A DNA stretch of 64,000 nucleotides from Lepidodermella squamata (GCA_047495785.1 JBLDXI010000021.1:310001-374000), one strand, 5' to 3'; positions 1 to 24,559 are shown, counted from the stretch's first letter. Notes: generated by a model from the letters alone, not told the origin. Translations and numbers: made by a program.

Positions 1-885
1 TTTTGCAATGAATTGATGACCTTCGCTAAATGCCCATATGATTTGGCTGGCTATGACCGTAATGCGATTTACGAAGCGGATGCGCCGCCGATTGATGTTG
101 ATGCCGAGCCAGAAGTGGAACCAGCTCATTTAGTCGACTTACTCGGCTCACCTGAATTCAATCCAAACCAAGGTGTTCGCTCGTCTTTCGCTGAAATTCC
201 AACATCATCGTCATCGATATCTGTTCCCCCAGCTCCCCGACTTCCGCTTCCATCATCGACCGAAGCTTATACCATCGAAATAAGCAGTGATTCAAGCAGT
301 GAATCCGAGTCTGAAGATTCATGGGTCGATGTTGATACAATCCAACGCGCTGGCGTTGTCTCTCAACAACCATCCGTCACCATAGTCCCTTCTGAAACCA
401 GCCGCAACTCGATGGGAAACGATGACGACGAAACGTTGTCTTCAGCAGGTTCGGATTGTTTAATTGTTGGCTTTGATAAACCGTGGGAGCAACGAACACC
501 GGTTCATTTAACGTCTGAATCAGATGACGAGAGAGCTCAAGCTAGCGGACTCGTTTCAGAAGTCCGTGAATCAGAAAACGTCGTTGATATGCGGAAGAGG
601 CAGAGGGAGACTGAGGCAATTTCTTGTTCGAGCGATGAAGACCAATCGCCATCTCCATCTGCTTTAGCTGCTCGGGGTAAAAGGTGGTCACCTCGAGCGT
701 TGTTAGCCGCAGCTTCCGGCGCATCTCGCTCTTCTTTCTTTCCCCCTCTTTTGACTGCCGATATGCAAAGCGACCCGGATGGCAGTTCGTCGTCCATGCG
801 TGACGCTTCTACCGATTCGGGAAATGAAGATAGAGGTCAGGTTAAAACAAATAGCCATCGACGGAAAAGTCAAAGGCTCGCCTGA
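1..885 (+). CDS. TOPORS: E3 ubiquitin/SUMO ligase Topors-like, C-terminal part (5' end outside window)
   Basis: Frame open from base 1. 'ELMTFAKCPYDLAGYDRNAIY' and 'SDCLIVGFDKPWEQRTPVHLTSESDDE' match recalled Topors motifs (HEFxSFARSPFNMxAFD; DCVIVGFVKPLAERTPELVELSSDSE). Ser/acid-rich. RING domain not in window. Confidence 0.75.
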   Translation, partial: FCNELMTFAKCPYDLAGYDRNAIYEADAPPIDVDAEPEVEPAHLVDLLGSPEFNPNQGVRSSFAEIPTSSSSISVPPAPRLPLPSSTEAYTIEISSDSSSESESEDSWVDVDTIQRAGVVSQQPSVTIVPSETSRNSMGNDDDETLSSAGSDCLIVGFDKPWEQRTPVHLTSESDDERAQASGLVSEVRESENVVDMRKRQRETEAISCSSDEDQSPSPSALAARGKRWSPRALLAAASGASRSSFFPPLLTADMQSDPDGSSSSMRDASTDSGNEDRGQVKTNSHRRKSQRLA

Positions 886-1083: not shown

Positions 1084-2034
1084 ATGAGTAGCTCAGAAGA
1101 AGTTTCATGGATATCGTGGTTTTGCGGGCTTCGCGGCAACGAATTTTTCTGCGAAGTCGACGAAGATTACATTCAGGACAAGTTCAACCTTACGGGGCTG
1201 AACGAACAAGTGCCTCATTACCGCCAGGCGCTGGACATGATTCTCGACCTCGAACCTGAGGACGATTACGAGGACAACCCGGCTCAGTCTGACCTGATTG
1301 AGCAAGCTGCTGAGATGCTGTACGGGCTCATTCACGCGCGTTACATCGTGACGAACCGAGGAATCGCTCAAATGGTGGAGAAATGGACGAATGGCGACTT
1401 CGGTTTTTGCCCTCGTGTCTACTGTGAAAATCAGCAGGTGCTTCCAATCGGATTGTCTGACGTACCTGGTGAAATGATGGTTGGTTTTATTTCTCATAAT
1501 TCGCCTAATATTTTTCGAATTTTTCAAAATCACTGAAATACCAAAAACTGAGAGAGCTGATTTTCTCGTTTTTATTCCGGAATTTTTTTGTCTATTTAGG
1601 TGAAGCTGTATTGCCCTCGGTGCATGGACATTTTCAACCCGAAATCGAGCCGGCACCAGCACATCGACGGCGCGTATTTCGGGACGGGATTCCCTCATAT
1701 GCTCTTTTTCGTCCACCCGGAGTACCGCCCGAAACGCCCCACTCAACAATTCGTGCCTCGCCTCTACGGCTTCAAGATCCACCCGGTGGCCTACCAGTTG
1801 CAGTACCAGGCCGCTGCCAACTTCAAATTCCCAGTCAGAGCGTTGTACCCCGCCGGGGCGAGCGGTAACGCGGGTACCTCGGTAGCCGGTGGCAACGGCG
1901 GCCCAGCAGCCAGTGCTTCGACAGGAGCCGGAGCAGCGGCAGCGGGCCCAGTCGACCCTATCGCAGCGACCCGTCGAATGGTAGACGGCGCGGGGGCACC
2001 CTTCGCTTCCACCAACGACAGGCCGTCTCGCTAA
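1084..2034 (+). CDS. CSNK2B: Casein kinase II regulatory subunit beta; exons 1084-1479, 1600-2034
   Basis: [36 protein letters not shown] is essentially the canonical N-terminus. Zinc-finger CPRVYC...YCPRC joined across a GT-AG intron at 1480-1599; [14 protein letters not shown] motif. Confidence 0.97.
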
Positions 2035-2587: not shown

Positions 2588-5500
2588 ATGAAAAAAATGA
2601 TTACAATACGCGCGATTTTCGTGTTGTTACTCGTCGTCGCCGGGTCTAATGCTGATTTCAGCCGAAAATACATGCACGCCGTCGATCAGATGTTCCGCGG
2701 CGTTTTGTCGTCTTTCCCGTTTCAGAATAATGTTGATAGTCGAATCAGCCAGCGACACGAATTCGGATCTCAAATCAACGATATTTACAACGCTTTTGCT
2801 AAAAATGGAAGATTGGATTTTTCTTCATTAAACCTACCGTCTATGCGGTGTACGATGGACGTTTTGAAGATCGTCACCGCCGCCAGGAGTAGTGACCCAC
2901 CGCGTTGGGCTATTGAATTCGCCGACGCGTTCTTCAAGCCACCAGCCGGACTATTGGACGGCAATCTCAACTGGCTTGGGGCTTTCGACGAATGCGTTCG
3001 AATCAAAGTTAGCGAGAAAAATTTTAACGCCACTGGGAAATATTGCCTGGTCCCTCTTTTTATGGACGACTCGAGTTCCACCTTAAAAGACGCCGTCCCC
3101 GGCTCGACTGAGGGCCTAAATCTCGGAATTTGCATACCGGACTCTTGCGATAAGGATGATGTTGTCAAGATGGTTGAATTCGCTAACAAATTCGTTCATG
3201 CTAACACCCGGTTCAATTCTTCATTTAATGTGATGACTAAACCGGAGAAAATGCGATGCCACGATCCTGAGCTTCCGTACTCGCGGTATTTCATCGCGTG
3301 TATGACGGTTTTCGGCTTTATCATTTTCATGAATATATTTTCAACGGTTTACGACGTGGTTTTGCGGTATTGTGGCCAGCAAGATTTCGATTATTCGCCA
3401 CTTGCCTCGCCGGATACGCCGACGATTTCGCCGGTTCATCTTCAAACCCCGTCGGCTTTGACGACTGAGCGGGAAAATAACAGCGGGGAGAGGCAGAGCC
3501 GTCGGGATAGAGTGCCTCAGATGACACCGATTAACGCAGCTAATTCGAGCATTACGGAGCCTCAGCCGCCGGTTCCAATGAATTTCCCGCCGTTGACTGT
3601 CACCACCTTAAAAAGGTCGACGAAGGGCGATCTAGCCTTATCGTTCTCCTTCATTCGCAATGCAGAGAAGTTGCTAAACACTTCGAATGCGAATGTTTCG
3701 AGGGCTATGGTTAATTTCGGGGCAGTGCATGGAATTCGGTTGATTTCGTTGCTTTGGGTGATCTTGGGCCATTCGTTCATCCTACCAATGGCGACTGTTG
3801 ATAACATCTTACCTGTTCTGAATTTCACGCGCCGATTCGAGTTCCAAGTCGTGAACCAAGCGTTATTGGCCGTTGATACGTTTTTCGTCCTGAGTGGGTT
3901 CCTGCTCGGGTATGTTGCGCTGAGGCAAATGGATAAGTTCGCGCAGACGCTTCGCCAGCAAACGCAGTTGACAACCCGCGCGAGAACCGGTCGGTGGTTC
4001 GGCTTCTTCGGATGTTTCTATGCGCACCGTTACCTGCGCCTGACGCCACTGCTCGCCTTCGTGCTCATCACCTACATGGGCATCGCGCCGTATTTACTCG
4101 ACGGGCCATTGTGGATCCAACAAACGGACGCTAATTGCGTTGACCACTGGTGGACAAACATTCTTTATATCAACAATTTTGTGCATCGCAACGAAGAGTG
4201 CATTGGCTGGACGTGGTACGGAACACATTAAAAACATGAAAGGCATTGTCTCATTTTATCATATTTTTATTTATTATCAGGTATTTGGCAGTCGATACTC
4301 AGTTGTTCATTGTCGCACCTATTCCGCTGTTGTGTTTCTTCTGGCGGCCCTTCCTCGGCTGGCTCAGCGTCGCTGCCTTTGTGATTCTTGCCGCGATCCT
4401 GAATGCGTACATTTCGTTTACGGAAGGCCTAACTGCCGCGCCGTTGTCTGGCTACTACTCGCTGAATATGACCGTTTTCGAGAAGCAATTGCAAGCTTTT
4501 GAAGTGAAATTTTTCGCAGATCTCTACATTCAACCGTGGTGTCGATGCGCCGCGTGGGCCATCGGTCTAGCTCTTGGTTGCTCGCTCAGTCGCATGCCTG
4601 CATCTTTCAGCAACACCAAGCTTCAATCAATTTTATCCCGAAAGGTACAAAATTTGATATTTTTTGCCAGTACCTATTTATGATGGAAAATTATAATTCA
4701 TTTATAAGCAGAAAAACCCGATCGTTTTGGCCACTTGACCCATTTACTCAATTTTCTCACAGTATAACCTGGCCATAAAGCCATAAACTTGGCACTGAGA
4801 GTAGTTTTCACGCACGAGCTACACACTTAGAGCATCTGAAGTTGGGGCTAATTTCATGGTACTGTTGTTTACATACTTTTTTAAATGGTGCAAATAATGA
4901 AATAATACAAGTACTCTAATAAATGTTTATTCTGGCCAACTTTCCCGGGCAGTACATTAACGTCGCAAGAGGGATGCATTTAGTATGCCGTCTCCACCAT
5001 AATTTACTGGGTCATTTTGGATAGTCATGGTTAATTTTACATTTATGAATAATTAGCTGGGCTATATGCGTTGGTATTTTGTGAGAATTTTCCGCTTCAA
5101 AAATAATCAATTTTGCTCCTCTGTGTTCATTGATTTTTCCGCATTGTTTACAGCTGGTTGCAATTTTCGGGTGGACTTTTGCGCTAATTTTCGGCCTCGG
5201 CATTGTTTACGGATTGTGGCCTGTTTACGAAGATTTTTACACGATCCCGCAGTGGCTGAGTTCGTTTTATTGGGCCGGGTCGCGCGTCGCCTGGGGACTC
5301 GTCGTCAGCTGGGTGATTTACGTTTGCGTCTCTGGGGCGTACGGGGCTCGTCCGGTGCGTGCCATTTTGGCCTATCCCGGCTTCGTACCGCTATCTCGCA
5401 TGTCGTACTGTGCCTACTTGATACATCCTATCGTTCTGTCGTGCTTCTTTTTATCTGCACGCAACCCGATTCATTTTAGCGGCCCGTTTTTCGCGTTTTT

Positions 5501-5615
5501 CTACTGCGGCACAATTATGTTGACTTTCCTACTGTCATTCATCATCACAGTCGCGGTTGAAATGCCATTCGCTAATCTCGACAAATTTTTACTGCCCGAG
5601 CGATCGCGCGAGTAA
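2588..5615 (+). CDS. NRF-6-like O-acyltransferase 1 (signal peptide + NRF domain + Acyl_transf_3); exons 2588-4215, 4281-4644, 5154-5615
   Basis: NRF motif 'DAFFKPPAGLLDGNLNWLGAFDEC...GKYC...LGICIPDSC'. AT3 motifs HGIRLISLLWVILGH, AVDTFF, HRYLRLTP, WWTNILYINN, WTWYLAVDTQLF, PLSRMSYCAYLIHP, VEMPF. Splice phases consistent. Confidence 0.9.
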
Positions 5616-6453
5616 CGGAATTGGTCCAAACAAAGACTTCTCAACAATCTGCATGAGTTTTTATCGCATTTATAATGCGTTATCTCGATACTGCTACAAC
5701 TATCTGGTCTTACCTCAATTCCTGGTGTGTAAATTAAAACGTAACTAACGCTAAAAATGGCCTGCTCAAGCAGAGCTTTATTCCTATTTTTCTGAAAAAT
5801 GTGATTTATTTTTCGAACGAATCTTTTTCTTGACACAGACTCTGTATATTTATTTACGAAGTAAAACAATGCTCAAATACGACTATTGTTTAATATAAGT
5901 ATATATTCACATACATATCATTGCAGAATAGCAGTTAAAATGTCTTTTTCCGCCAAAAATAACAGTTTTACTGTATACTTACTCCGTCGAAAAGTGAGTT
6001 GGTTCTCTGGCATATGTTTACGCTGCTGCATTTCATTTATTTTCGCGCGCAGAATCGTGATTGTTTGAAGTTTCTTGTATTTATCTTCGCAGCTTCAGCA
6101 TAAATATGCGTGAAAAAGAGCACTTGAACGCTATCCACCTTAATGAAATCTTGCTTAAATTATTATCATCCAACGCGAATTTTTCTTGCAAGATATTTAA
6201 TTATATCCTACAGGTTTGCTCAAGGGAATGACTTGGGGTAAATTTGACCCTCGGGATATGCGAGCTTAGCGCCTTATTTTTCATTATAAAATTTGCTCAA
6301 ATTACTGTAATCAAAAAATTCGAAAAAGGGGAATTTTGCGACTTTGGCCACCGCAAATTTATATTAATATGGAAAGGTTTTGTCTCTGAAGATTTGCTGT
6401 TTTTCTTAGCGATTGATCATTTAATCATTGCCGCACTGTTTTTAGGAGTTTTT

Positions 6454-8954
6454 ATGTTAATTTTATCGCTGGTTGTAATCGCGGCGTTGGGAGCGGTCCC
6501 AAGCGCCAGCGAGACTCCGCGGGCCTCTTTTTCGCTGCGTTACGAGCAGTTGATAAACACCGTCTATCGGCTCCATTTATCGCCGGATAAAACAATCGCC
6601 ACTCTGCAAGGCCAAGGCGAATACCAGAGCGAAGTTCTGCGCGATTTAGCCAATTTTATGCTTATCCACAACACGCCATACGCATATCTAATCGACTACG
6701 TGACCACAACTTATGGCCATAACTACGAAAGCTGGGCGGACATGACGCCGTGCGAGTCGGATCTTTTCCGACTCCTGTTATCACTTCTTTCGCCGAGTGA
6801 AGAAATTTTACGATTTATTGACGCTCAACCCAAACCACCGGCCGGTATTTTGGATGGAAATATCAACTGGTGGGGGGCGTTCGATGAATGCGTCGCTATT
6901 AACGTGTCAACTGAGGCGGTGAAAACCATTGGAACTTACTGCCTGGTGCCTATTGATGTTGCGGTTAAGCTGGGCCTATGCGTGCCGGCGTCTTGTAAAC
7001 CGAAGGACATCGTAGGACTCGTTGAGGCGGTTAATAAGTTCGCGCACAGCAACAAATATTACAATTTAACAGCGATTAACATCACAACGACCGAAGATAG
7101 CATCATGTGCAATGACCCTGATCTGCCCTACTCGACCTACTTCATAGTCGCATGGGTCGTCGTAGGTATAATTGTCTTCCTTAACGTGCTGTCGACGGGT
7201 TACGACATTGGCAAACGCGTTTATGCGTCGCATTTCAGTTCTAACCTAACAATCAGTGGTAACGTGTTGGAAATTTCAGCCAGCACTAATCTCTTTCTGC
7301 CAAATAACGCGACCTCAACAGCGATAGCCGTTGATGATGAGGCGCCGCTGGTCAGTGATATAGATCGACCGCCGAGTTCAGGCGCGCAATCCAGCTCGAT
7401 TCCGGTTGTATCCAGCCAAAAAAGTTCATCTCATAGTCAAAAAGATGAATTCTTATCATCGTTTTCTTTGCTTCAAAACGGCGCGAAATTGCTCAATGTC
7501 GACGCGCCTGTTTCTCGAGGCCAACACACGCTGCAGGTCCTTCACGGTATCCGCCTTATTTCAATGCTATGGGTCATTTTATCGCACACCCTGCTGTTTG
7601 GCGCATACTCCGGTGTCGATAATATATTAACCCTCCTTAAATTATTCAAAAATTGGGAGTTTCAAGCGATTTTACACGCGTTTTATGCGGTTGATACGTT
7701 CTTGGTTCTCGGCGGGTTTCTACTTGGTTTTCTCACCCTGAGGCAGTTGGATAAGCTGGAAACTATGCCTGGACATCGAGTTGGTAAATATTTCAAGTTT
7801 TTCGCCAAATTTTACGTTCATCGCTGGTTGCGATTGACGCCGACCTATATTCTTCTCCTGCTGGTCTATCTCGGCATTGCGCCCTACGGATTGCATGGCC
7901 CGACCTGGGAACAATACCCTGACCCGATATGCGCGGATAATTTCAACTGGTGGAAAAATATTTTATACGTTCACAATTTGATTGACAAAGGATCACTTTG
8001 CGCGCCCTGGACGTGGTATTTATCGGTTGATTTCCAGCTTTTCTTGATCAGTCCTATCCCATTATTGGCTTTCTATTGGAAACCACTTGCTGGTTGGGCC
8101 GTATCTTTGATAATTGTCCTAGTTTCCGCTGTGAGCAGCGGTCTTATTGCTAACAAGGTAAGGGAGAAATTTGGTTGATTTTTCTGAATCATATTCTCTT
8201 CATTTATTTTCTTAGTACAATTTTGATGGAGCCATATTATCGCCTTTTGTCAACAATTTCAGTGCCCCGGTTGATATTGCCGGCCTTCAAGATGACTTTT
8301 TCGGTGATTATTTTGTTCAGCCGTGGTGTCGAGCCGCACCCTGGGCTATTGGCCTCGCATTTGGCTGCGCCCTTCACCGCATGCCTCCCTCATTTTCTAA
8401 CGCCCGTCTGCAGCACAAAGCAGTTAGAATTGTAAGTCGAAAAGTTTACTTTTATGCCCGTTTATTTTTTCTCCCTTCAATTTCAGATTGTTGGAATTAT
8501 TGGCTGGTCATTTTCCATCACATGTGGTATCCTTTTGATATACGGCATGCAGCCTGTTTATGCTGGAGATTACACGCTATCACCATTTGTTTCCCAGTTA
8601 TACTGGGCAGCTTCGAGAATTGCATGGGGTCTATCGATCACTTGGGTCATTTACGCTTGTATCGCCGGAATTTTCCCTGGAAATATTCTGCGGCATTTCT
8701 TATCATGGAGCGCGTTTGTGCCGCTGTCCAGGCTAACCTATTGCGCCTATTTGTTCCACCCTATCGTGATGTTCTTATATTTCTGGACTATGCGCAGTCC
8801 TTTCCACATTTACGCCATGGAGTTGACGTATCTATTCTTAGCTGGCACTTTCTTAACTTTTGCGGCGGTTTCCGTGATCGCAGTCGGTGTAGAAATGCCT
8901 CTCTCGAATTTGGAACGGCTCATTCTAGACCGGCAGCATCACCACAAAGATTGA
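6454..8954 (+). CDS. NRF-6-like O-acyltransferase 2; exons 6454-8157, 8216-8431, 8487-8954
   Basis: ATG 6454 gives a signal peptide (MLILSLVVIAALGAVPSAS). Same NRF and AT3 motifs (HGIRLISMLWVILSH, AVDTF, HRWLRLTP, WTWYLSVDFQLF, LSRLTYCAYLFHP). Phase-0 introns join in frame. Confidence 0.9.
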
Positions 8955-9211
8955 TTTCATCGATGATCGATATTTCTTCATGTGATTTGTTTATTTTTTA
9001 GTATTAATTCCTCTGACAATTTCTGCTGAGACGCAATTCATGAGCATTCCGCACTTGGGCACGGTGCTTGATTTTTTTATTGATTTTAACTCCAACCGAT
9101 GATTTTATTGCGACGCAGGGTGCACTTCTAACAAAAAGGCGAACAAAGCTTTCAATTTGCTTTTTCCTCTTATAGGATCTTATTTTTTTAATTCATGTCT
9201 TTCAATCGCGA

Positions 9212-10475
9212 ATGAAGCGATATCGTTTTGGGTTGTCTTTGGCTATAGTTTTGCTGAATTTCGCCCTGCTGAGTTTGTTGAGCAGTTCGATATTCGAGTC
9301 AAATGTTGGGAGAATCAAATTTACAGATCGGAAGAAATTGATTTTCTTCGGCTCAAACTTCTTCAGTGGACCATTCAATTTTTCGATGCTTCCTCCTGAA
9401 TGTGGCGTTACGAACAAAATTCACGAGGCTGATGCCGTGATTGTCCATTCGCTAAATCAAGATTTTCTCGGCGGTGCTGTGAACAGCCGAGAGCAACGGC
9501 GGGCGATGAATGTTTCTCAAGACCAAGTTTGGATCATTATGATGTACGAATCTCCGGGCTTCTACAGACTATCAGGGGAGAGCTACAACTGGACAATGAC
9601 CTATCGACGCGATTCTGACGTCTACTCACCGTATGCTGGTCATATTGAGGCGGCGTCGCCTGGGAAAGCCATGGCAGATTTAAGGCCTGATCTCGAAAAA
9701 TTGCGCCCTAATCGAACAGCGCTTTCCATCGCTTGGATGGTGTCGAATTGTCACACTTCAAATCAGCGCATGGAGTACGCAAAAGACCTAGGTCGTCACG
9801 TTCCTGTCACTATCTACGGCGGTTGTGGTAAACCAGGTTGCCACGGCCCTCCGGAAGTTTGTTGGAAACAGTTAGCGGGGAGATATAAATACTACCTGAG
9901 TTTCGAAAACACGAATTGCAAGGATTATATCACCGAGAAATTTATCCAAGCCCTTTATTACGGGATGCTACCAATTGTTTATGGCGGTTCGTCCGTTGAA
10001 GATTATCGCGCCATCGCTCCGCCGCATTCTTACATTGACACGAGAGATTTTTCGTCGCCGAAAGATTTGGCCGAGTATTTGGTTGAGTTGGAAAAGAATC
10101 CGCATTTGTACGAGGCGTATTTTGATTGGCGCAAGACCCACTTGGCTGTAATTGATCCGCCATTCAGCGGGCAGGATATTTTGTGCCAGAAGTTGTGGAA
10201 TCTTGATGCGAATAGGAAAAGTTATACCTCTCAGGTTCGACTGTTCAGTTGTTTTTAAAAAATCAGTAATTTGAGTGCAAAAATACGTTACCTACAAATT
10301 TTGTTTCGAATTTTTTTTTAATTTTTCTTCTATCCAGAAAGTGATTACGTTTGTGTTATAGGAGTTGGCCAATTGGTGGACTAATGGAAGCTGTGTACCG
10401 CCCCATTTCACGCCTTCAAATGGTCAAACCCCATTCAAATTTCCTGAGATCCCTATTGCAAAAATTCCCAATTAG
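9212..10475 (+). CDS. Alpha-(1,3)-fucosyltransferase 1 (GT10); exons 9212-10234, 10362-10475
   Basis: Type II TM at N-terminus; MYESP, YNWTMTYRRDSDV, AWMVSNC, YKYYLSFENTNCKDYITEKF, YEAYFDWR. Last exon ELANWWTNGSC. Confidence 0.92.
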
Positions 10476-10828
10476 TAACAAGGCATAATTTTCTCTCTAT
10501 ATATACATTTTGATCTAGTCTTCTCTGAATCACACGGTGCCGTTGCTCAAAACCACTGCCGAATAATGTTATTTATTTTTCTTTTTGTTTCTAAATATGT
10601 GTTTATATATTGTATAGATCCCCCTGATAACTTGACCTTGTGTTGTAAATACCTGGAAAACACGGTCAAGTTGTTGTTTTAAATTATATATTTGTACAAT
10701 CGAGAGAATATCCGTAATGCAGTGAAAAGTGACCAACAAACTCGGCGTGATTTTCTCCATCGCTCACAACTTGTGTCTCATCCCCGTGTTGTCCGTGCCA
10801 AATTGTGCCTAATACCCGCCCGTCCTCG

Positions 10829-12648
10829 ATGCAGCCGCTGCGCTACCGGTTCAAATGCCTACTGCTTGTCCTTGCCGCCGCCATGTCTTTGGTCATTATT
10901 GTGACGAATACAAACCACCTGCTGGGCTCAAAGCCAGGCCTGAATTCTGGCTCAAATGCTAAAACTGACCTAGATACAACGAACAACGACCCGCCCGATT
11001 TCGCTGAAGTACCAGTGGTTGGCGATGAAAAATCAGATGTGATAAGTGAAGACAACGACGACCGGCCTGATGTTGTGAAATTCATCACACCAGGGCCGCT
11101 GCCGAAAGATGTTAAGGATGATACGCGAAAATTGATCTACTTCGCGTCGCCATTTTTCGGCGGGCCGTTCACTTTTAACGAACTGCCTAAAGAATGTCGC
11201 ACGTCTTCAGACCCGAATGATTTGAAAAAAGCAGACGCTGTGGTGGTTCATGCTCTCGGTGGTTCGCCTATAATGGATATGCATAGCGAGGATGGGCGTA
11301 AAAGAATGGGCGTGCCTGCGAATCAAGTTTGGGTCGGTTTGATGTACGAAAGCCCTGGTATCTACTCGAATTTGCCGGGCATTTACAACTACACGATGAC
11401 CTTTCGACGTGATAGCGACATTTACTCGCCGTATTGCGGTCGGTTTGAACTCGCGAAAAAGGGAAAATCGATCGCGGAGCAGGAGCCTACTTTGGAAAGT
11501 TACCGCACAAAAGGCAACCGGTCTAAACAAGTGGCATGGATGGTTTCGAATTGTCACGCTGCAAATTTTCGTAAGTCATTTTTTTTCGAAAATTGGCACC
11601 AAAGTTGATGAGTCATGTATATGTTGTACGCCTATAGGGGATTTAAGGCTTTAGGGTATGAGCATTATATTTAACCAAAATAATGGCCAAACCGTGATGG
11701 TCACAGTCGATCATCGTATTTCAATCGATTGCTGTAATCAAGGGCTATCGATTGGTATGTAATCGAATTCCACGCGGAACATTTGAAAATCTGTTTTTTG
11801 CCTTCAAAGTTGGAAAAATGCGTATAATATTGCGTATATGCACAATTTGAAGTATATACTTCAAATGGTGCAAAATTTAGATGGCATACGAACTTTTTTA
11901 ATTGGCAATTAAGCCGATCTTTATTAAACCTTTTAAATTCGAATAACCGAAAAAAATTAAGTTTTAAGGAGGATTTTTCGAAAAAATTTTGAATAAACAA
12001 TCATAATAATAAGTGCTCATTGTTTCAGGAATGGACTATGCAAAAGAGCTTGCGAAATACATATCTGTTGATATCTATGGCGCATGTTCGCCGAACGGCC
12101 TGAGTTGTGTTCGTTTCAGCACTGGCAGTTCGGATCGAGGCTGCTGGGAAATGATCGCGAGAGATTACAAGTTTTATCTGAGTTTCGAATCAAGTCACTG
12201 CAAGGACTACATTACGGAGAAATTTTTCACCCCGATGTACTACGGCCTTCTACCTATTGTCTACGGAGCGTCATCAGTCGAAGATTACCGCGCAATGGCG
12301 CCGAAACATTCGTACCTAGACACGCGTGACTTCAAATCTCCGAAAGGTGTGTTTTTTTGAAGTTTTTAACCAGCCTAAAATAAGTGTTTTATTCCTTTAG
12401 AATTGGCGGAATTGTTGTTGAAATTGGACAAATCTCCGAAAGAGTACAACGCTTATTTCGCATGGAGGAAGCGTTACATGGTTCATTACAATCGAACATT
12501 CGTCGGTCAGGATATTCTCTGCTCGAAGTTGTGGAACATTGACAAAAACAGGCACTCTTACACCGAGAAGGAGCTCAACAAATGGTGGCTTGAAGATGGC
12601 AAATGCGTCCCCCCGCCTTGGAAACCGATGGGTGAACCCCATCACTGA
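10829..12648 (+). CDS. Alpha-(1,3)-fucosyltransferase 2 (GT10); exons 10829-11570, 12029-12346, 12401-12648
   Basis: N-terminal TM plus stem; MYESP, YNYTMTFRRDSDI, VAWMVSNC, YKFYLSFESSHCKDYITEKF, YNAYFAWR, LNKWWLEDGKC. Splice phases consistent. Confidence 0.92.
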
Positions 12649-14101
12649 GTATTATTACGAGCTGTGCGAATTTCAAGCTGTGATTAAAATCATACTTTAT
12701 TAGTTTTTTTTTCATCGATTTCAAAAACTCTAGTTTCTTCCTTGTCAAAAAAGCGGGCGCTTTTGTTGAGTGAGTGAGTGAGTATTATTAACGTTCGACT
12801 TCGAGAAAGTGTGAGAGCTATTATGACTGATTGAATGGCGTGTAGTGCCAAATAATCGAGCCATGGGTTCGAAATTGAGCTAGTACCTTAAAAATCGCGG
12901 AGAACTATGCAAGAAGACTCAATTGCACACCCGGTTTGTTGTTGTTCTTTGTTGTTGTGTTGTGCCGCCGCGTTGATGGAGATATTTGAATTGAACCCTC
13001 TAAAAAAATTGTTATTTTTCATCCGCCTTACTTGTCGTCACCCGAATTCAAAACTGTTATTTTGTGACCCCTTTGAAGAAATTATATATATGATATATAT
13101 TTATTGCACTATTTGCTGATTATTCCCAGAATCTCTTTATTTTATTTCAACATTGTATTCTGGCTATGGAAAACTGCTAACCGCCCCCCAAAGATTTTAT
13201 TTATACCTTGATGTTACGTTTTATTTTTTTGAAACGCCTTAAATTATATTTCTTGCACCACGGAACAAAATCTTCAAATTTTACGATATCTGAAATTATT
13301 TCAAAAGTATTGTTATTTTTTCCTTATCTTTTCTGCGTCCAAAAAATCTCTGATACTTGGAGTTATTTGCAGAGTTCTTTCCTTACGTTGCTGCTTTTGT
13401 GTCGCTTGAAGGGTGAAACCTATGGCAAATTGTTGTTTGTGTGCCAAAATGCCGAAAAATAATCGAATTCACCTGTCTTTTTTTGTTCGCAAAGAAGTGA
13501 TAGCACGTGATTAGTAAGTATGCTATGTTTTCAGAATCGAATTGCTGCGCTCAAATTTTTTTTGCTTCACGGAAACTTGCTAAAAATTTATTTGCGAAAT
13601 CGAATGAAAATGATAGCGTGAAGAGTGTTGTACAATACAAAAGTATTCAAGCCGGAAAATGTATCTGAACATTGTTTTCATTGTGGTGATATTACTGTAT
13701 TAAGCGCACGGTTGTTATGTTTTGTTTCACTATCATCTCATCAAAAACTGTTATCGATATAAAAGAATAATAAATTTGCTGATGCGTAAAAACTGTTAAC
13801 TTTTTATAAGGTGGATTTTAAAATTTCGGGGTCAGGGATAATAATTAGCATGAAGCCACATTATTTGTTTATTCACTCATTGTTTTGGCGTTGAAACGCG
13901 CACATTCACAACAAAGCCACCTGACCTCGCTACAACAAAGCTGCAGAGAGATTAGCGCACGTAACTGCAGTCGTTTTATTTGCCTAGGTAGCTGAACAGC
14001 ACACTTGACACGCTGCAACAGAATTACAGTGGCGGCGTTATTTCAGCAAAAGATGAAGACATTTTATCTCTGAGAAGAGTCTTTAACATAGCGGCGTAGA
14101 T

Positions 14102-15613
14102 ATGCCTGCGTACGGCGGCTGCTATGCTCAGCCTAGAGCCCTGGCGCCGCTGTTTTTGCTGTCATTTCTAGTCCTAATCGCGCTCTTCTTCCTAATATCC
14201 AGCGATTCAAACTCGGAAAACCAGTCACCTGAACAACAAATCGCACCTCATCACTCTCAGCCAAATGTCTCCGTCATTCACCCAATCCCTGAAATTCCAG
14301 TCAATGTCCCGGAGAAAGACAGGTTTCATTATTTTCCCCCCATTTCCCGCGAAAATAAAACTGAGCTTTTTATGCAGGAAAGTCATATTTTTAGGGACAA
14401 ATTTTTTCGGTGAGCCTTTCAACTTCAAAGACATGCCGCAAGCTTGCAAGGTGTCTAGCGACCTGAGCGATAAGGCAACAGCCGATGCCGTAGTAGTTCA
14501 CGCCCTCGAAACGCCGCAGGAAATGTCAGAAAAATCGACTGAAAATCGCGAACAATTTGGCGTAAAAAACCCGAATCAAGTTTGGGTTGGCATCATGTAT
14601 GAGTCATCGCACATTTACCCTCATATAACCGGGAATTTCAACTGGACGATGACTTTTCGACGAGACAGCGATATTTACTCGCCGTATTGCGGTAAATTTG
14701 AACTGGCGCCGAAGGGCAGAGCGATGGTGGACCTGGAACCCCGGTTTGAAGAATTTCGAAAAAGCGGTTCGCGGCGAAAACGAGTCGCGTGGATGGTATC
14801 GAACTGTCAAGATGAAAATCTACGGCTAAGCTACGCCTTGGAATTGGGCCGCTACATTGACGTTGACATTTACGGGAGATGTTCGCCGAGAGGGCTTGAA
14901 TGTAAGCGACAAATAAATTTATCCTTTCAATATTCAAAGTCGGATGAAATTTGTAGGTGACAGAGGAGGAACGAAATGCTGGGAAATGGTCGCCTCCCAA
15001 TATAAATTTTATTTGTCTTTCGAGTCGACTCTATGCAAGGACTATATCACTGAGAAATTTTACACTCCGATGTACTTTGGCGTTCTGCCTATTGTTTACG
15101 GCGGATCTTCGCAAGCGGACTATCGAGCCATTGCCCCGGAACATTCCTACATCGACACTCGAGATTTTGAATCTCCCAAGGAACTTGCCAATTATTTACA
15201 CAAGTTGGACGCGTCACCTGAGCTTTATGAAGCTTACTTCACCTGGCGGAAAAGTTACGTAGTTCAAACGAATCGGTCTTTCATTGGGCAGGATGAATTA
15301 TGCGGGAAACTTTGGAACCTGGATCAATATCGGAAAGCTGGATCGTCCAAGGTTTCATTTAATCTATTTAAATTGGCAGTGATATCCTGGATTTTTCTTT
15401 TTCTTGTAGAATTTCAAGGAATGGTGGAAAGGTGGAGGAGGCTGCGTGGCTCCCAACTACAAACCATCGACTTGGGGTTTCTTGCTGTTGAAATTAGTTT
15501 CAATTGGAGTCTGCATTTCAACAGTGGGCTATCTCATTCGAGCTTTTTTGCTGCGCTCCCTTGCTCGACAAAGGTATCATCTTCATCGAAGTTCCATACC
15601 TTATCAATTGTGA
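14102..15613 (+). CDS. Alpha-(1,3)-fucosyltransferase 3 (GT10); exons 14102-14322, 14378-14901, 14957-15351, 15410-15613
   Basis: N-terminal TM; MYESS, FNWTMTFRRDSDI, VAWMVSNC, YKFYLSFESTLCKDYITEKF. Three 55-58 nt introns; last exon NFKEWWKGGGGC...YQL*. Confidence 0.9.
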
Positions 15614-16136
15614 CCCGAAAATTATTTTATTCACTCAAATAGCATGATCGACGTTGGAATCGCTTGACGCTGGAAATGATCTGTTTTTTTTGTTGCCGAT
15701 TGATTAATGCAATTTTTAAATAAAGCCGATTGATTTTCGCTCATATGACGCTTCGAGGATAACGTAACTTATTCAAGAAACAGAGATTCTTATCAAGCAT
15801 AATGCTTATCAGGCGGCAATTTTTTACGCTTCACTGGTGTCAGCCATTGACCCACGTGAGACGAACAGCTAAATGATATTGGTATGGCCTGAGGGGTAAG
15901 TGGCAGACATTAATAGAGGCCAAATTTTTAGTAAAGAACCACGCGAAACAGCTGGTTGTAGGCATGATTACGTGCTGTGATACATTTTTGTTTGTTTTAT
16001 ATTAAAACTACTTGCTTTAAGTTTCATTTTTTTGCTGAAAAAATGAACTGACCTCGGACTTGCACTTATCACAATAGAAATAACTATTATCCAAGCAGTT
16101 TTCAGACGCAGACATCAGCATTTTGTCTTTTTTTAG

Positions 16137-18584
16137 ATGATTTTTTCGATATTTACAGCGCTTGTTGTCCTGCAAACATCGTTTGCTCTGGAATCTTCAT
16201 CTTATTCGCAAACCTATAAACAATGGATGAATTCAGCCTATCATATGCAGTTGGATCCAAGTTCTGCATTCGAGCAATGGCACCACGAAATTGATTCTCA
16301 ACAAGAAATAGCGAGAGACCTTGCTGCTTTCGTAACCTTTCACGGTTCCCCGGCTAGTTTCTTATATCGAATGGCGTTGGAAAACGATGAAAATGGCTTG
16401 AAACTGTTATTTCCAAAGTTGAAAAATGAAAACTGCCAAGGTGACCTCATTCGAATTTTATTGTCCTTGATAACGAAAAACAAACTTCCGGCCATCAAAT
16501 TTCTCGATGCCCAGGCTAAAATACCAGCAGGCTTGATCGATGGCAATCTTCATTGGTTCGGAGCTTGGGACGAATGCCTGTCTCTCGAATTTACAAATCG
16601 AACGGGCCAAGTGCATAACGTTGGCCAATACTGCCTGGTGCCAATCGGCTCAGCTCTACAATTAGGGCTTTGCTTACCTGACTCTTGCGATCGAGATGAC
16701 ATTGTCTCCATTGTCGCTGCAGTCGACAAAGTGGCTCATAACAACAAATATCACAATATTACAAAATTTAACATTACTACATCGCGCGAGGCAATCATGT
16801 GCAACGATCCGAATCCACCCTATTCGACATACTTTACCGTCGCCGTGACCATCTCGTCGATTCTGTTGCTGCTCAACGTTCTTTCAACTGGGTTTGACAT
16901 CGCGAAAAGACTGAAACTTCCTTGCCTTGCCTCGAAGGATATCGTTAATATCGATCAACCTTTGGTTTTCAACGATGAAGACGCTGACCCGCAGCTTGTC
17001 AGCGAAATATCGCAAGCGCCGTATTTCCAGCCTAAAGATTCTAACGGATCTAGAGTAGTCGTCAAAAGCCAAATCGACGAGTACCTATTATCTTTTTCAA
17101 TTATCAAAAATGGAGCGAAGTTACTCGACACAACCCCAGCCACGATTCGCCGAACTCCCCATACGCTGAGATTCCTTCACGGATTGAAAGCGCTGTCGAT
17201 GTGGTGGGGAATTTTAGGCCATCTTATCCTGCTATCTGTCCGAGCTGGGGTCATTGATAATCCCCGTTATATTTTGGTGCTATTCCAGGACTACGCTTTC
17301 ATATGCCAAATAATTTTGCATTCCCTCTACGCGCCGGACACATTTCTATTAATTGCCGGGTTTCTGATTGGTTACCTAACGATTCGCCGACTGGATAAGT
17401 TGGATTTCACCCCTCCGTTCGCTGTGAAAGAGTTTTTCAAATTTATCGGAGGTTATTACCTGCATCGGTGGCTGAGACTGACCCCGACCTACGCGTTTTG
17501 TTTACTCATCTACCTCGGCGTAGTGCCTTACTTCATGCATGGCCCAGCCTGGCACCAGGCTCCGGACCCAACGTGTGTTGACAACCTGAGTTGGTGGAAG
17601 AATTTGCTCTACGTCAACAATTTAATTGATCACGAAAATATCTGCTTGCCTTGGACTTGGTACATATCAGTCGATGTTCAGTTGTTTTTGATCAGCCCGA
17701 TTCCTTTACTAGCGTTCTATTGGCGACCTATTGCCGGCTGGATTGTTACGCTGGCGATTGTTTTCTTCTCGTCCCTTAGCAACGGTTTGATGGCAGCAAA
17801 GGTACATATAAATGAAACCCAGAATTTTTATGAATTTTTAAAATTTAGTACAACATTTACGGAGCTCCGCTGGCACTTGTGATCAATAACAGCAGCATGC
17901 CGTACGATGTTACGGAATTTAAGGAGCAATTTATTGGCGATTTCTTCACCATGCCCTGGAATCGGGCGACTTGTTGGGCCATTGGACTGGCTTTCGGCTG
18001 CGCACTCAACCGCATGCCTCCTTCATTTGCGAACCCCCGTCTTCAGGGCAGAACGTTCCGCATCGTAAGTAAAATCAGATGTTTCATAGATTGAAAACAA
18101 TTTCGAACTTTGATTATAGGTGATCGGAGTCGCCGGCTGGATTACGTCTTTCGTTCTCGGCTTTCTGATGGTTTTCGGAATGTGGCCTGTTTACCGTGGC
18201 CAATATGCTCTACCTGACGTCATCTCCCACCTGTACTGGGCCGGCTCTCGAGTCGCGTGGGGAATCGCCCTAACTTGGCTAATCTACGCCTGCATCACTG
18301 GGATATTTCCGGGTAATGTCATTCGCAAACTGTTGGCTTCAAGCACTCTCGTCGTGCTATCCCGGCTGACTTTCGCCGCCTACCTGATGCACCCGTTCTT
18401 GATACGGCTGTACCTGTGGACGATGCGGAACCCTTACCACGTGTATGGCATGGAGCTGATTTACCTGTACATAGCATCAGGATTTTTCACCTTCCTATGT
18501 GTTCCTATTGTGACTGTGATGGTTGAAATGCCATTTGCTAACTTGGAACGATTAATTTTTCATAGACACTCGCATAAGGATTGA
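16137..18584 (+). CDS. NRF-6-like O-acyltransferase 3; exons 16137-17801, 17849-18064, 18120-18584
   Basis: Signal peptide; DAQAKIPAGLIDGNLHWFGAWDEC; HGLKALSMWWGILGH, HRWLRLTP, WTWYISVDVQLF, VEMPFANLE. Same two intron positions as paralog 2. Confidence 0.9.
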
Positions 18585-18762
18585 TCAGTGTGATTATAGC
18601 TATCGAGTCAGATCGGATTCAAGTCAACTTGTGATTTAAAACAGAGTAATTGTCAGTAATAGATTTTTCAAATAAAAACTCGATAATTTTTAGTAGTATC
18701 ATTGCACAATTTTATTTCACTAATTGTTTAATATTTAATAATGAGAAGATCTGAAAAATCAA

Positions 18763-18828
18763 CGGTACGGTGACAAAACAGCAACGTCGCAGAACAGCGA
18801 ATGCGACAAAACAGCAAATAACAGCTAT
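18763..18828. repeat. Partial copy (one arm) of the MITE at 23720-23884
   Basis: cggtacggtgacaaaacagcaacgtcgcagaacagcgaatgcgacaaaacagca is nearly identical to 23720-23772. Confidence 0.75.
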
Positions 18829-19352
18829 AATGCGATTGCAATTAGAAAAGAGATTGCATGAAATTGTCAAAGATCAAACGATATTCACTGTGTCATGTGG
18901 ATAAATTCAACGCTTTTAAGGTGGAACTTTGTTCAAGGTGAACCGGCATCGACGATGTCTGCAAGTCCTGCGGCGAAGGGCGAACTAGCAGCTGAATTGT
19001 TTTCATCGTCATCATCGCTCATTTTATCAGCCTTATTCTCAGCATCTGAGCCGCTTTCTGACGACATCACAACTGACTTCAACTTTGAATGATGGATGCT
19101 AATCACATGGCTGCGTTATATGTACCTATCAAAATTCTAGTTGTTCGTGTGCCAACGGTTTTTGCACCCCAGGATTGCGAAGTTTACTTGATTTAAAATT
19201 TCTCGCCCTAAAGAATTATCAACAACCAATGGCGTGCTCCGTTCTTATATTTAAACAGTATAAAATGGAGAGATATGTCCGTAAAAATGACTTTTATTGT
19301 TGAAGCTGTGTAAAAAAAAACCGAGGTAATTCACTGATCAAGTCGCTCAGGT

Positions 19353-20827
19353 TTAGAGGGCAGCATAGCGCGACGAACTCGGAACAGCTCGGTAATCAGT
19401 GACTTTTTTCGCCAGCTGCATGTCGGTTCTATTGAGTCCTCGTGTACGAAACGAATCATTAAATCCATTGCCGAAAATCATGTCGGGAAGCGGGAATGCT
19501 TGCTTCTGATGAACTTGAGCCTCGGCTGCGTCAAAAGAGAGGCGTTTACCCATTCTCGCGTTAAGCGCTGTCACTTTTTGCGATCCTAGTTATACAAATA
19601 ATATGAGTTAACGGGCAAGGTGACCAATTATTGCATAATTCAATGGGAAGAAATCAATCAGATTCCTTCAATCAAACTGCGCCAAGAGTAAACGAAGTGA
19701 TTAAATTTAAAGTGTTTCGTCTGTTTCGTATGTAATGAGTAAATAATTCGCATCGGAGAATTCGATGAACATATTTTGGATATACCTATCTTTCAAATAA
19801 TATTCAAAAACATCAATTTTCGATAATCAATGCTGAAAATTTTTAGAGTTTTACCGCTGGAGTATGCCGTGGAAAATAAATTCGGATTCCGATTTCCCGA
19901 AGCCGCGTTAACCAGGACCCCGTCAACCCTACACCCCTGTCTCGATTTAACCCTTTCACGGCGGGAAGGACGATTTCGGAATTTCGACTTTGCTAATTCA
20001 CAGTTCCATCAATTTAACGAATTTGTCCATTATAATTGGCAAAATACTACTTTCGGATGTTGCCTACAAGAATCCGAAAGTCAAATTTAGTTATCTCTTC
20101 CCCTCTTGGAATACGATCAATTTTAAAATTTCAAACCGATGCACGTTTTTCTTATTTTTTTTCAATCGAGTAAACCAATGTCTTGGGTATTTTTCCGGGT
20201 CTATCTGACTTCACAGGCGTGTCCGGCAGGGTTTAATTGACTACCCAGTTTGTTTTTTAGAAATTCCATGAAAAAATGACAGCACAATACCCTGGCTGAC
20301 GATTTCTATGAATTCATCCGGATGAATGTAAATTTGAAAAAATAGCGGAATTGAAAATTTTAGTGGCGCATATTTTAGTGAAAATATGCGCATCAGGCCT
20401 TAGAATAGCATGTGGTTGCCGATTTTCCGATTCCTTCCTTAATTTGCTAGAAATTTAAAAAATTCGATTTTTTTGCTTGGCTGAAAAAAAATTACGCCGT
20501 GAAAGGGTTAAAACCTGCTACATTTCATTGGTTCGTTTTTAGACGACACATTACACATTATATACGACATCCGCAAGATTAGTGCAAGGTTCATAGTTCA
20601 TAGTTCGTAGTTCATAAAAAAAACAAATAAAGCACCAGTTTTGCCAAAGACAACGCTGATTTTCCATAAATGCGAAAAAAGTGAACATGGGCAGAGGCAG
20701 ACAGCATTATTTCCATTGACTTACTTTTATCATGTGGTCGCTCACTGCTCGAAGTTCCAACTTTGTGAGCAGCCGAAGATGTGATGTGTCGATTTGTCAC
20801 ATCAGCCCGTGAACTACCTGAGCCCAT
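19353..20827 (-). CDS. Putative 111-aa orphan protein with N-myristoylation motif; exons 20827-20725, 19585-19353
   Basis: MGSGSSRADV... exon ends at a GTAAGT donor (phase 1) and joins in frame to the exon after a 'ataactag' acceptor. The intron contains the piggyBac-type MITE. Confidence 0.5.
19951..20507. mobile_element. Non-autonomous piggyBac-type element (MITE)
   Basis: Perfect 13-bp TIR CCCTTTCACGGCG...CGCCGTGAAAGGG, flanked by TTAA at 19947-19950 and 20508-20511. Confidence 0.88.
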
Positions 20828-21397
20828 GCTTATTTTTGCGATTTCCAAAATTTCAGAAAAAAATATTGGAAAGTGACTGAGTGGCTGAAATATATAACGA
20901 GCGAAGTGATGAATTGCCTAGCAACAACCGTGTGAAACTATTCAGAAAAACGCCTTCATCCTTGAAAATGTGCGGCGGATCTTTCAAGTGGTTTGTTCCA
21001 GAATATGATGAAAAGAATTCGGTGCAGTTTGATTTATTGAGTATCGGCATCAATTAAAGCTGCGCTATCTTGGTATACTGATATTATGATGATCTAATTT
21101 CTACCTACGCTCAAATTTACTGCTGCCCAAAAAATAGTTCAAAGCGTCACATTTTATTATTTGCTGAGAAACGGTACAGGATAAACGACATCTTTTTCAG
21201 TCGAAAAATGAGCGTTGTTTGAAATTCAGCGCACGCCTAAAATGATGCCGCTCCTGCCCCTTTCATTGCTCAAAATAACTTGAGCAGGGTCTCGGATGTT
21301 AATTAATCAGCGCATAACAGGTAAAGCGCTCAAATAAATTACGCATGTAAGAATTGAAACAAACACTTAGTTCGAAGTCTTTCATTGAATGTTTGTG

Positions 21398-21726
21398 TCA
21401 AATATATTCATCGACGATGTCAAGTAGAGCCTGCTTTTGGAGTCGCACTTCTTTGGCGGTTTTTCTCACCAGATACCATTTATACAACAAAATACCAGCA
21501 ACTATAGCCTTTAAATTTAAAAAATATACTGCTTATTTTCTGTAATTCATGACTATTGCTTCTTACCATAAATAATGCGATTACTGAAACGGGTGCGACG
21601 TGCCAAAACAGATTGGTGTACTTCTGAGCAGCAACTTCCAAATTCTTCTTCCCATGCCTTAGCAGACAATAATAAATGTAAAAAAATGAGAAATCTTAAC
21701 ACTCACTGATCTGTGTTCTCTGACAT
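21398..21726 (-). CDS. Putative 73-aa single-pass membrane microprotein; exons 21726-21707, 21657-21567, 21508-21398
   Basis: Spliced product MSENTDQHGKKNLEVAAQKYTNLFWHVAPVSVIALFMAIVAGILLYKWYLVRKTAKEVRLQKQALLDIVDEYI*. Donors GTGAGT and GTAAGA; introns 49 and 58 nt; both acceptors are AAG (less common). Confidence 0.55.
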
Positions 21727-22227
21727 TTTACTCGAAATTTCTGGAAATAGGAGTTGAATAGCTAAAACACTAGGTACTAATTAGCAACAGTATCAATGAA
21801 TCGCAATGATGCGTTCATTTTCTGAAAAATATTTGCTAGCATATTTGTTTTTTCAGATGTTCAGGCGTCAGTCCCTAGATTGCACTCCGACACTACTGGA
21901 TACTATTATTATTTCGTATTATTAGTATTATTTTGCGCTCGTGTATTTGTCGCACTTGTCACATCTTATGCGTTCAAATCAGCGACATACACCGTCTTTT
22001 CGCCATATACTGTTTACCTAATCATTTTCACGTGCAAATAAAAAACGCAAGTCATGGCAACGTGTTTCTTTATTATATCCGTCTTTCAAATTTTATAAAA
22101 TAGGTTAAAACCTTCGCTCACGCGACTAGAATCATGAGTTCTTAAAATCGTGAAAGTTCAAACATTTCACACGATCAACGCGACCAACTTCGATAGAAAA
22201 GGGTCTCAAAAATGGGCTTGAAAAATT

Positions 22228-22400
22228 TGTAGACCAGATTACGCACAATTGTAGACCACTCAAGGTGGTGCGTAGACCAAAAGGGTGCGCGCGCAGACCA
22301 AACGCAACAGCTGTAGACCAGCACGCACACTTGTCGACCAAACTGTTAAATTGTAGACCATTCAAAAATTTAATTGTAGACCAACGTGTATATCGGCTAA
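22228..22400. repeat. Array of GTAGACCA motifs (about 8 degenerate copies), probable transposon subterminal repeats
   Basis: Repeated gtagacca/gtcgacca/gcagacca at ~20-25 nt spacing; inverted counterpart at 24330-24450. Confidence 0.6.
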
Positions 22401-23051
22401 TTTTGGCTAATTTCCATGCCTTTGACGATTTTAAACCTTCAATTATCCTTTGAGCTATCAGGCGAAGAGCTGTCCAGTGAAGAATCGGCCGAGGAGCCTT
22501 TTACTGCCGAGGCTATAGAAAATCAGGTTGATGAGGAGGCTGATTGTTTAGAGGCAATCGTCAAGCAGACAGTCGAGGCGGACGAGTTGGCCTATAAACA
22601 AACCCCACACCATTGGGGTTTGTTTATAGGCATATATTATAACAAAGATTCCGAGGCCTGATTTCCTGAAGGCAAATAATTGGCGAAATGGCATGACAGA
22701 AGCCTACTGCTATTGCGATTGTGCGGGCAGAAGCGTGTGCCGCAACCAGTTGAAAACAGTCGAAACACCGTCAGCCGTTGTCGTTTTCACTAAGTCGATT
22801 GCTCACCAGCGAAATCAGCAGCAGTGTCCACACTTAATGATCAAGTTAAGCAGCTGATTCGCAACGCATTTATTGCACCAATCACGCGCAATCCACCCAT
22901 TTCATCCAATCTTCAAACAGCACGCGCACACGCACGCACCCGCTGCGCACCTCGACACGCACCCCCGCGCGACGTCTGAGACAGTTTGCCGTGTTTTACA
23001 GCCGACGGATCAAGGGATTATCTGTATTGGAGTGTTTACACGCCGGTTTAG

Positions 23052-23514: not shown

Positions 23515-23719
23515 CCGGTTTAGCTACTAGCTGCGTGAATAAGAGCTACGGACCGTGTCCGGTCATTGAACTGGGTCGCCGCATGAACGCGCTACCTACA
23601 ACTGCAACAACAAATCAAAATAGCTAAAACTTATCCCAGGATTTTTTAAGAAATCAGCAATTTGCGATATTATTATAGGACTAATTTCAAGTGATCGGAA
23701 TTGAAAGATGCGTCGACCG

Positions 23720-24460: not shown

Positions 24461-24559
24461 CCTCCTCAAAAATCGAGATATAAAAGAAAGTTGTGAGAAA
24501 ATATGGAAAGCTACAGGTTTGGACACTTTGATTGAACGCCGTCTTCAATGAGAACTCGG

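Follow-up and report, generated by a model that had tools for sequence, protein, structure and literature searches.

What holds genes for two kinds of glycan- and acyl-handling enzymes side by side in an animal genome, in an order that interleaves the families? The question is raised by a stretch of 64,000 nucleotides from Lepidodermella squamata (GCA_047495785.1 JBLDXI010000021.1:310001-374000), which we call the window and number from its first letter. Positions 2588-18584 of its + strand contain six intact genes: three encode NRF-6-type acyltransferases of the Acyl_transf_3 family (AT1, AT2, AT3) and three encode GT10 fucosyltransferases (FucT1, FucT2, FucT3), arranged AT-AT-FucT-FucT-FucT-AT. 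A reading made earlier from the sequence alone had suggested that this arrangement may be a co-regulated route to glycans that are both fucosylated and O-acylated. Our own interpretation, to which we give somewhat better than even chances, is that two tandem families are adjacent by descent, in a neighbourhood that is real and old, any functional link between them being hypothetical. It is built on spliced gene models for all six loci, on a distantly related metagenome scaffold that keeps part of the same gene order, and on trees in which the duplications are placed relative to the split between the two lineages.

Six genes of two families

Pfam searches located NRF (PF20146) and Acyl_transf_3 (PF01757) domains in the open reading frames (ORFs) at 2588, 6244 and 16137, and Glyco_tran_10_N and Glyco_transf_10 domains in those at 9212, 10805 and 14265/14944. 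Self-BLAST of stop-to-stop pieces made the paralogy within each family visible, revealing two further 3' exons for each AT and a spread of FucT2 and FucT3 over several frames. The gene models (Table 1) were guided by full-length animal NRF-6 proteins and by proteins encoded without interruption on L001, a metagenome scaffold from a relative (ENA scaffold_581 of ERZ23486787, 57.6 kb); the spliced models were analysed by local scripts, and database searches used single exons. All six frames are stop-free after joining, and every intron is canonical GT-AG, between 47 and 509 nt in length. The intergenic spacers are, in order, 838, 257, 353, 1453 and 523 nt long, and neither spacer ORFs nor antisense ORFs of the cluster gave a Pfam match. 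The sequence-only reading had described six intact, co-oriented genes in this order, with spacers of 257-1453 nt and no unrelated gene in between. Domain matches, self-BLAST and the stop-free spliced models bear that description out, and the spacer range is the same on the revised models; the genes and their order are as first proposed, and the ends of FucT1, AT2, FucT2 and FucT3 have been moved. Elsewhere in the window tblastn (E<=10) detected neither further copies nor relics of the two families. A segmental duplication had been considered as the origin of AT3, and FucT or AT relics of one were sought in that search; with none found, this candidate was set aside.

Table 1. Genes and other features of the cluster and its upstream edge (window coordinates)
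Feature	Coordinates	Strand	Length and basis
AT1, NRF-6-type acyltransferase-3	2588-4215, 4281-4644, 5154-5615	+	817 aa; homology and GT-AG, predicted introns
AT2, NRF-6-type acyltransferase-3	6454-8157, 8216-8431, 8487-8954	+	795 aa; predicted introns
FucT1, GT10 fucosyltransferase	9212-10234, 10362-10475	+	378 aa; intron seen in X2/X3 contigs
FucT2, GT10 fucosyltransferase	10829-11570, 12029-12346, 12401-12648	+	435 aa; both introns predicted, then confirmed in X2/X3
FucT3, GT10 fucosyltransferase	14102-14322, 14378-14901, 14957-15351, 15410-15613	+	447 aa; first two introns in X2, third predicted
AT3, NRF-6-type acyltransferase-3	16137-17801, 17849-18064, 18120-18584	+	781 aa; predicted introns
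Transcribed stretch, ORF-free	12583-13503	.	X2 contig 12583-13503, X3 contigs 12714-13184
Topors-like, upstream neighbour in conserved block	1-885	+	BLASTP against L001; label from L001 Pfam table
CK2beta, upstream neighbour in conserved block	1084-1536, 1600-2034	+	BLASTP against L001; label from L001 Pfam table

The NRF domain exceeds its gathering score in all three ATs (58-77 bits, where 27 are required; E-values of 2.3e-21 in AT1, 1.4e-15 in AT2 and 9.2e-18 in AT3). Acyl_transf_3 is likewise matched in each, with 64.6 bits in AT2 (1e-17), 41.2 bits in AT3 (1.4e-10) and 29.9 bits in AT1, the last figure coming from exon 1 alone and set against a cut-off of 31. AT2 most likely starts at the ATG at 6454, which yields a signal peptide, rather than at the TTG at 6244 where the ORF opens, and the donor of its second intron is ambiguous between 8423 and 8432. 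A crude hydropathy scan gives each AT an N-terminal signal-like segment followed by 9-10 further hydrophobic segments. When the three window proteins are aligned with the two ATs of L001, His434, Arg425 and the motifs DTF(F/L)V(L)xGF and HR(Y/W)LRLTP are invariant, with an Arg-to-His spacing of 8 residues, compared with 10 in the bacterial AT3 motif definition. The H, FFxISG and RxxR signatures of that definition are essential in bacterial AT3 enzymes (PMC7448272, from which the definitions are taken), and the His, DTF(F/L)VLxGF and HRxLRLTP motifs of the window and L001 proteins are their counterparts. A PDB profile search with the AT alignment returned no solved structural relative and no match to CASD1. 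Judging from the family, the ATs would be multi-pass proteins with a lumenal, cysteine-rich NRF domain, which would take an acyl group from acyl-CoA in the cytosol and hand it, by way of a pore in the membrane, to an acceptor in the lumen or outside the cell.

One AT intron differs in size from the others. The predicted second intron of AT1 (4645-5153) is 509 nt long, about ten times the length of the remaining AT introns (47-65 nt); at the same position the L001 orthologue of AT1 has a predicted intron of 204 nt, and AT2, AT3 and the second L001 acyltransferase (ATb) have introns of 52-55 nt.

Among the fucosyltransferases, FucT1 matches Glyco_transf_10 at 9e-50 (its two GT10 domains score 169 and 51 bits) and human FUT9 (8d0o) at 2.3e-30. 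Exons of FucT2 and FucT3 score 55-57 bits for the GT10 N domain; the C domain scores 35 and 135 bits in FucT3, and the C-domain exons of FucT2 are 55-76% identical to FucT1, FucT3 and the L001 fucosyltransferase, P0001. With its last exon FucT1 extends to 10475, compared with 10258 in the first reading, while FucT2 begins at the ATG at 10829 and FucT3 at 14102, with an intron near its 5' end. The third FucT3 intron (15352-15409) is a prediction only, introduced because it is needed for the conserved C-terminal EWW..GxC motif. Breakage of FucT2 and FucT3, suggested by their split ORFs, was ruled out, since the splits are introns confirmed by spliced contigs. Each protein has a single N-terminal hydrophobic segment in the hydropathy scan (residues 10-28, 8-26 and 14-32, respectively), of the kind that forms a type II anchor.

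Equivalents of FUT9 residues Glu137, Asn195, Arg202 and Lys256 are present in all three FucTs, as judged from the FUT9 and family alignments. In FUT9, Glu137 is the catalytic base and Asn246 is reported to stabilise the transition state (PMC12717137). The Asn246 position, which is the N of the FEN motif found almost universally in GT10 proteins, is Asn in FucT1 and Ser in FucT2, FucT3 and the L001 FucT (YLSFES...). Since the L001 orthologue has the Asn-to-Ser change as well, the change is old and has been retained, and the resulting FES might mark altered catalysis or donor handling. From what is known of the family, the FucTs would be type II Golgi enzymes that transfer fucose from GDP-fucose to a lumenal glycan acceptor, the Glu of a YES(P/S) motif probably serving as catalytic base.

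Transcription of the fucosyltransferase genes

Three public sequencing runs (X1, X2 and X3) contain the stretch, and their contigs were compared with the window over 9100-15099, the FucT region. X1 represents unspliced DNA from a relative with 90-95% identity. The X2 and X3 contigs skip exactly 10235-10361, 11571-12028, 12347-12400, 14323-14377 and 14902-14956, each bounded by GT..AG, and from the skipping of these five introns we conclude that each of the three FucT genes gives rise to spliced transcripts; the FucT1 intron (127 nt) is seen as a joint in both X2 and X3. The differences from X1 provide an indication of selection. In the FucT1 coding sequence 19 of the 20 listed differences fall at third codon positions (counted on the models), as do 6 of the 7 listed for FucT2 exon 1, and this bias indicates purifying selection on FucT1 and FucT2.

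One X2 contig stops at 10523 and continues into a 10-letter tail that does not match the window, AAGCAGTGGT, which we take to be the start of the SMART complementary DNA (cDNA) adaptor; X2 is treated as cDNA on this basis. Transcripts of FucT1 seem to stop some 48 nt beyond the end of the coding sequence, and the gap between FucT1 and FucT2 is spanned by no listed X2 contig, the next one starting at 10637. This contig end and the unspanned gap fit separate messenger RNAs and not an obligatory polycistron, with the proviso that contigs cannot prove RNA ends. Separate messages would agree with an arrangement in which the six genes shared only a chromatin or regulatory neighbourhood active in one secretory cell type (of cuticle, adhesive gland or egg coat, for example), the ATs acting on a lipid, yolk component or small molecule and the FucTs on glycans. 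Common strand and short spacers would suit such an arrangement, as would the effect of nrf-6 and ndg-4 on yolk and lipid distribution (PMC3919970) and the requirement for four oac genes in the production of volatile sex pheromones (PMC12799122). It is nonetheless an unlikely explanation in our estimate, and the upstream regions speak against it, since they yielded no shared motif: across all six, only an A-rich 7-mer rose above a lenient shuffle, and it is not taken as evidence. The same phenotypes weaken the case for the glycan role that the sequence-only reading had proposed for the ATs, because the animal AT3 genes whose phenotypes are known suggest lipids and volatile pheromones as much as glycans (PMC12799122, PMC3919970).

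Two features of the FucT region lie outside the coding exons. The first is the ORF-free transcribed stretch that begins at the end of FucT2 (Table 1), which is either a long 3' untranslated region (UTR) of FucT2 or a non-coding RNA. The cDNA-like X2/X3 contigs continue for about 860 nt beyond the FucT2 stop codon, unusually far for a 3' UTR in a genome with 55-nt introns. As the 1453-nt spacer between FucT2 and FucT3 is transcribed, an extra gene there was considered and discarded, the spacer containing only short ORFs and no Pfam match. The second is the first intron of FucT2 (11571-12028), where, especially within 11500-11900, the summed contig depth of X1 rises from about 95 to more than 2000, with loose ends and 'opposite strands' joints; positions 11839-11872 form a palindrome of 17+17 nt with a perfect centre. 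This intron looks like the host of a high-copy foldback element or one resembling a miniature inverted-repeat transposable element (MITE), of which the window contains no second copy.

Conserved order and duplication history

The best match to FucT1 is P0001 (47% identity), encoded at 10001-11314 of L001 and preceded there by two NRF/Acyl_transf_3 genes on the same strand. Piecewise BLASTP between window and scaffold identified five genes whose order and strand are kept: orthologues of a Topors-like gene (36% identity), CK2beta (90% and 69% in its two exons), AT1 (52%), AT2 (ATb, P0121; 50% over the large exon) and FucT2, to which the L001 fucosyltransferase is closest (59-75%). The sequence-only reading had held that linkage missing from relatives would count against it; L001, the sole relative available, retains AT-AT-FucT. 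Synonymous sites are saturated between the two (synonymous divergence, dS, is undefined) and DNA aligns in coding parts only, indicating that the split between window and L001 is deep. Conservation stops at the L001 fucosyltransferase: in the 19 kb on its 3' side nothing matches the window, and neither family has another gene there. In the databases searched, the lineage consists of these two organisms and the X1 relative. A word search with the large exon of AT2, at an over-strict threshold of E<=1e-30, found only the L001 orthologue, and nothing else was retrieved when the last exon of AT1, which is conserved, served as query. The AT and FucT genes of L001 are uninterrupted at places where those of the window have introns (4216-4280, 8158-8215 and 11571-12028), so introns have been gained or lost since the split.

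Phylogenetic trees allow the duplications to be ordered relative to this split. FucT2 pairs with P0001 (support 98-99/94), FucT3 branches next and FucT1 is outermost; forcing the window FucTs into one clade is rejected (approximately unbiased test, AU, p = 0.0024). Topology and test together place the FucT triplication before the divergence of window and L001. The window FucTs, the L001 FucT and three metagenome proteins make up a clade of their own that lies outside the FucTA group (100/100). For the ATs, the tree joins AT1 to the first L001 acyltransferase, ATa (100/100), AT2 and AT3 are sisters (99/96), and ATb branches just outside them; the three window and two L001 proteins make up a clade of their own (100/100) on a long stem. 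The FucT triplet is thus nested between the two closest AT paralogues, as the sequence-only reading had proposed, and by its position and branch length AT3 is a younger, faster-evolving duplicate of AT2. We would reconstruct a common ancestor with L001 that carried AT1, AT2 and two or three FucTs beside the Topors-like and CK2beta genes. The window lineage would have retained all three FucTs and later received a copy of AT2 on the far side of the triplet, becoming AT3, and the L001 lineage would have lost or moved two FucTs and left one at the site.

The longest branches in these trees belong to FucT3 (0.80-0.83) and AT3 (0.86). Long branches could mark a decaying array, in which FucT3, AT3 or the FucTs with the FES motif are inactive relics and the count of six genes overstates the functional content; Ser at the position of FUT9 Asn246 in FucT2 and FucT3 (PMC12717137) would agree with this, as would the purely predicted status of the AT introns and of the final intron in FucT3. 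We regard decay as very improbable, however, given that the six frames are open after splicing, that transcripts of FucT2 and FucT3 exist and show correct splicing, that the Asn-to-Ser change is old enough to be present in the L001 orthologue and was kept, and that 6 of the 7 listed differences between FucT2 and the X1 relative fall at third codon positions.

That two unrelated tandem families, each enlarged by local duplication, came to be neighbours and stayed so by descent is the reading we prefer for this history. Order has been preserved for more than the ATs and FucTs, since the block shared with L001 extends to the Topors-like and CK2beta genes, which are unrelated to either family, and ordinary microsynteny accounts for that block equally well. 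Several observations nonetheless weigh against descent as the whole explanation. The AT-AT-FucT adjacency outlived the saturation of dS while the right flank was reshuffled; old FucT paralogues remained together, and a new AT copy was kept at the edge of the same cluster; all six genes share one strand and short spacers; and the activity best known for enzymes with an AT3 domain is the O-acylation of carbohydrates (PMC9833829, PMC7448272). Such points fit selection for linkage and are unexplained by duplication alone.

Selection for linkage would be expected if the two families were coupled, with the FucTs fucosylating a Golgi glycan, the ATs O-acylating that fucose or an adjacent sugar, and the linkage being kept by co-regulation or co-inheritance. 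We consider such coupling possible but, on balance, doubtful. In its favour are the AT-AT-FucT order of L001, which persists despite saturated dS and the loss of downstream synteny, and the retention of the young AT3 copy beside the FucT triplet. Catalytic residues have been kept in both families, namely the His, FFxxSG-like and RxxR motifs of the ATs (PMC7448272) and the FucT equivalents of Glu137, Asn195, Arg202 and Lys256 (PMC12717137); transcripts of every FucT occur in a single cDNA sample (X2), and both families face the secretory lumen. There are also precedents for the chemistry, since AT3 proteins O-acylate carbohydrates across life (PMC9833829) and sialic acids are O-acetylated in the Golgi by CASD1 (PMC12423673, PMC13043746). 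Counting against coupling are the unrelated Topors-like and CK2beta genes in the conserved block and the lack of any upstream motif above noise.

Linkage in other genomes was sought as well, and AT-FucT linkage was found neither at the NRF-6 gene of the tardigrade Hypsibius nor at one metagenome FucT pair. Nor did tblastn with six GT10 proteins detect a fucosyltransferase in the 22 metagenome AT loci of at least 7 kb (of 80; 313 kb in total), a negative that is weak evidence because these are distant AT relatives (24-38% identity), possibly not all of them animal. A literature search found no paper connecting the NRF/AT3 and GT10 families. Animal glycoproteins with acylated fucose did not turn up in it either; for animals, the search for the term returned only coral glycosides. 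In its specific form, that NRF-6-type ATs O-acylate the fucosylated glycans of their neighbours in a cluster held together since before the split of two deep micro-invertebrate lineages, the proposal is therefore put forward only tentatively, as an idea we think rather improbable. Much of what the sequence-only reading had asserted is retained (the two families, and the intactness and order of the genes), and the linkage in L001 fits it, as does a secretory topology consisting of signal peptide, lumenal NRF domain and about 10 membrane helices in the ATs and a type II anchor in the FucTs. The co-regulated acyl-fucose pathway that it proposed finds no direct support, in view of the unrelated genes in the block, the missing linkage elsewhere and the absence of a shared motif.

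Beyond the cluster, the region directly 3' of AT3 (18600-27500) comprises about 9 kb without a Pfam-matching ORF, containing only short frames; it is strikingly empty next to the densely packed cluster and coincides with the end of L001 synteny. Within it, ORF pieces at 22999-23244 (-) and 23343-23624 (+), inverted and about 100 nt apart, are 93% identical over 57 residues; 22999-23624 possibly represents the arms of a transposable element. Farther downstream, at 34813-37556 (+), is a class C G protein-coupled receptor gene (ANF_receptor and 7tm_3 domains) extending over at least two ORFs. Together with the NRF domain, CK2beta and introns of about 55 nt, this gene marks the sequence clearly as animal.

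The two families in other systems

Members of the NRF-domain family have phenotypes in yolk transport, pathogen adhesion, pheromones, and the integrity of gut and eggshell in the fly. The ATs belong to a very large family whose genes frequently lie in tandem, which favours adjacency by descent over coupling. An AT profile matched 9657 cluster representatives, several of the top matches being merged multi-copy predictions, and C. elegans has 63 such acyltransferase genes, tandem sets among them (PMC12799122). An acceptor is known for no member with an NRF domain (PMC12799122, PMC12423673).

The significance of the locus depends on which account of it is correct. Were the pathway coupled, it would provide the first defined acceptor class for the orphan NRF-6/OAC/Drop-dead family and an instance in an animal of the clustering of glycan genes familiar from bacteria. 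NRF-domain acyltransferases are among the larger enzyme families of invertebrates, and a conserved physical link to fucosyltransferases gives them a concrete hypothesis. If the arrangement reflects descent only, it is a clean example of two tandem families that have been interleaved for a very long time, and a caution on inferring function from adjacency.

Four known systems can be set beside the cluster. The closest in architecture are NRF-6, NDG-4 and the OAC proteins of C. elegans and Drop-dead of Drosophila, which have the same signal peptide, cysteine-rich NRF domain and multi-pass Acyl_transf_3 domain with His and an RxxR-type motif, and among which tandem arrays are likewise common (PMC12799122). 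The closest named proteins are annotated 'nose resistant to fluoxetine protein 6-like' and come from a nemertean, a tardigrade and molluscs, whereas the window and L001 ATs form their own clade with no named orthologue. The family match says nothing about the substrate of the ATs.

Animal GT10 enzymes, represented by human FUT9 (8d0o) and insect FucTA and FucTC, share with the window FucTs the same two Pfam domains, the type II anchor, and the FxxxFE(N/S)xxCxDYITEK and C-terminal WW..GxC motifs. The window proteins differ in falling outside the core-fucosyltransferase group, FucTA, and in the Ser that replaces Asn246 in FucT2, FucT3 and the L001 protein; the acceptor and the linkage formed are unreadable from sequence.

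In bacteria, AT3 genes are located in glycan gene clusters and modify a sugar added by neighbouring enzymes; rhizobial NolL, for example, acetylates the fucose of Nod factor. OafA/OafB, Oac and NolL have an AT3 membrane domain in which, as in the window ATs, one His is invariant and FFxxSG-like and RxxR motifs are present (PMC7448272). Unlike them, the window ATs have no SGNH domain and carry the animal-specific NRF domain instead, their Arg-His spacing is 8 and not 10, and their genes are separate, intron-containing eukaryotic transcripts; an activity of the window ATs on sugars would be by analogy only.

An animal parallel for the chemistry is CASD1. It differs from the window proteins in having a lumenal SGNH catalytic domain, and it is not picked up by the Pfam build of the window ATs, which combine NRF and AT3. 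Its membrane domain is AT3-like (TmAT), and in the Golgi of animals it adds O-acetyl groups to a terminal sugar of glycans (PMC12423673, PMC13043746), so that chemistry of this kind does exist in animals.

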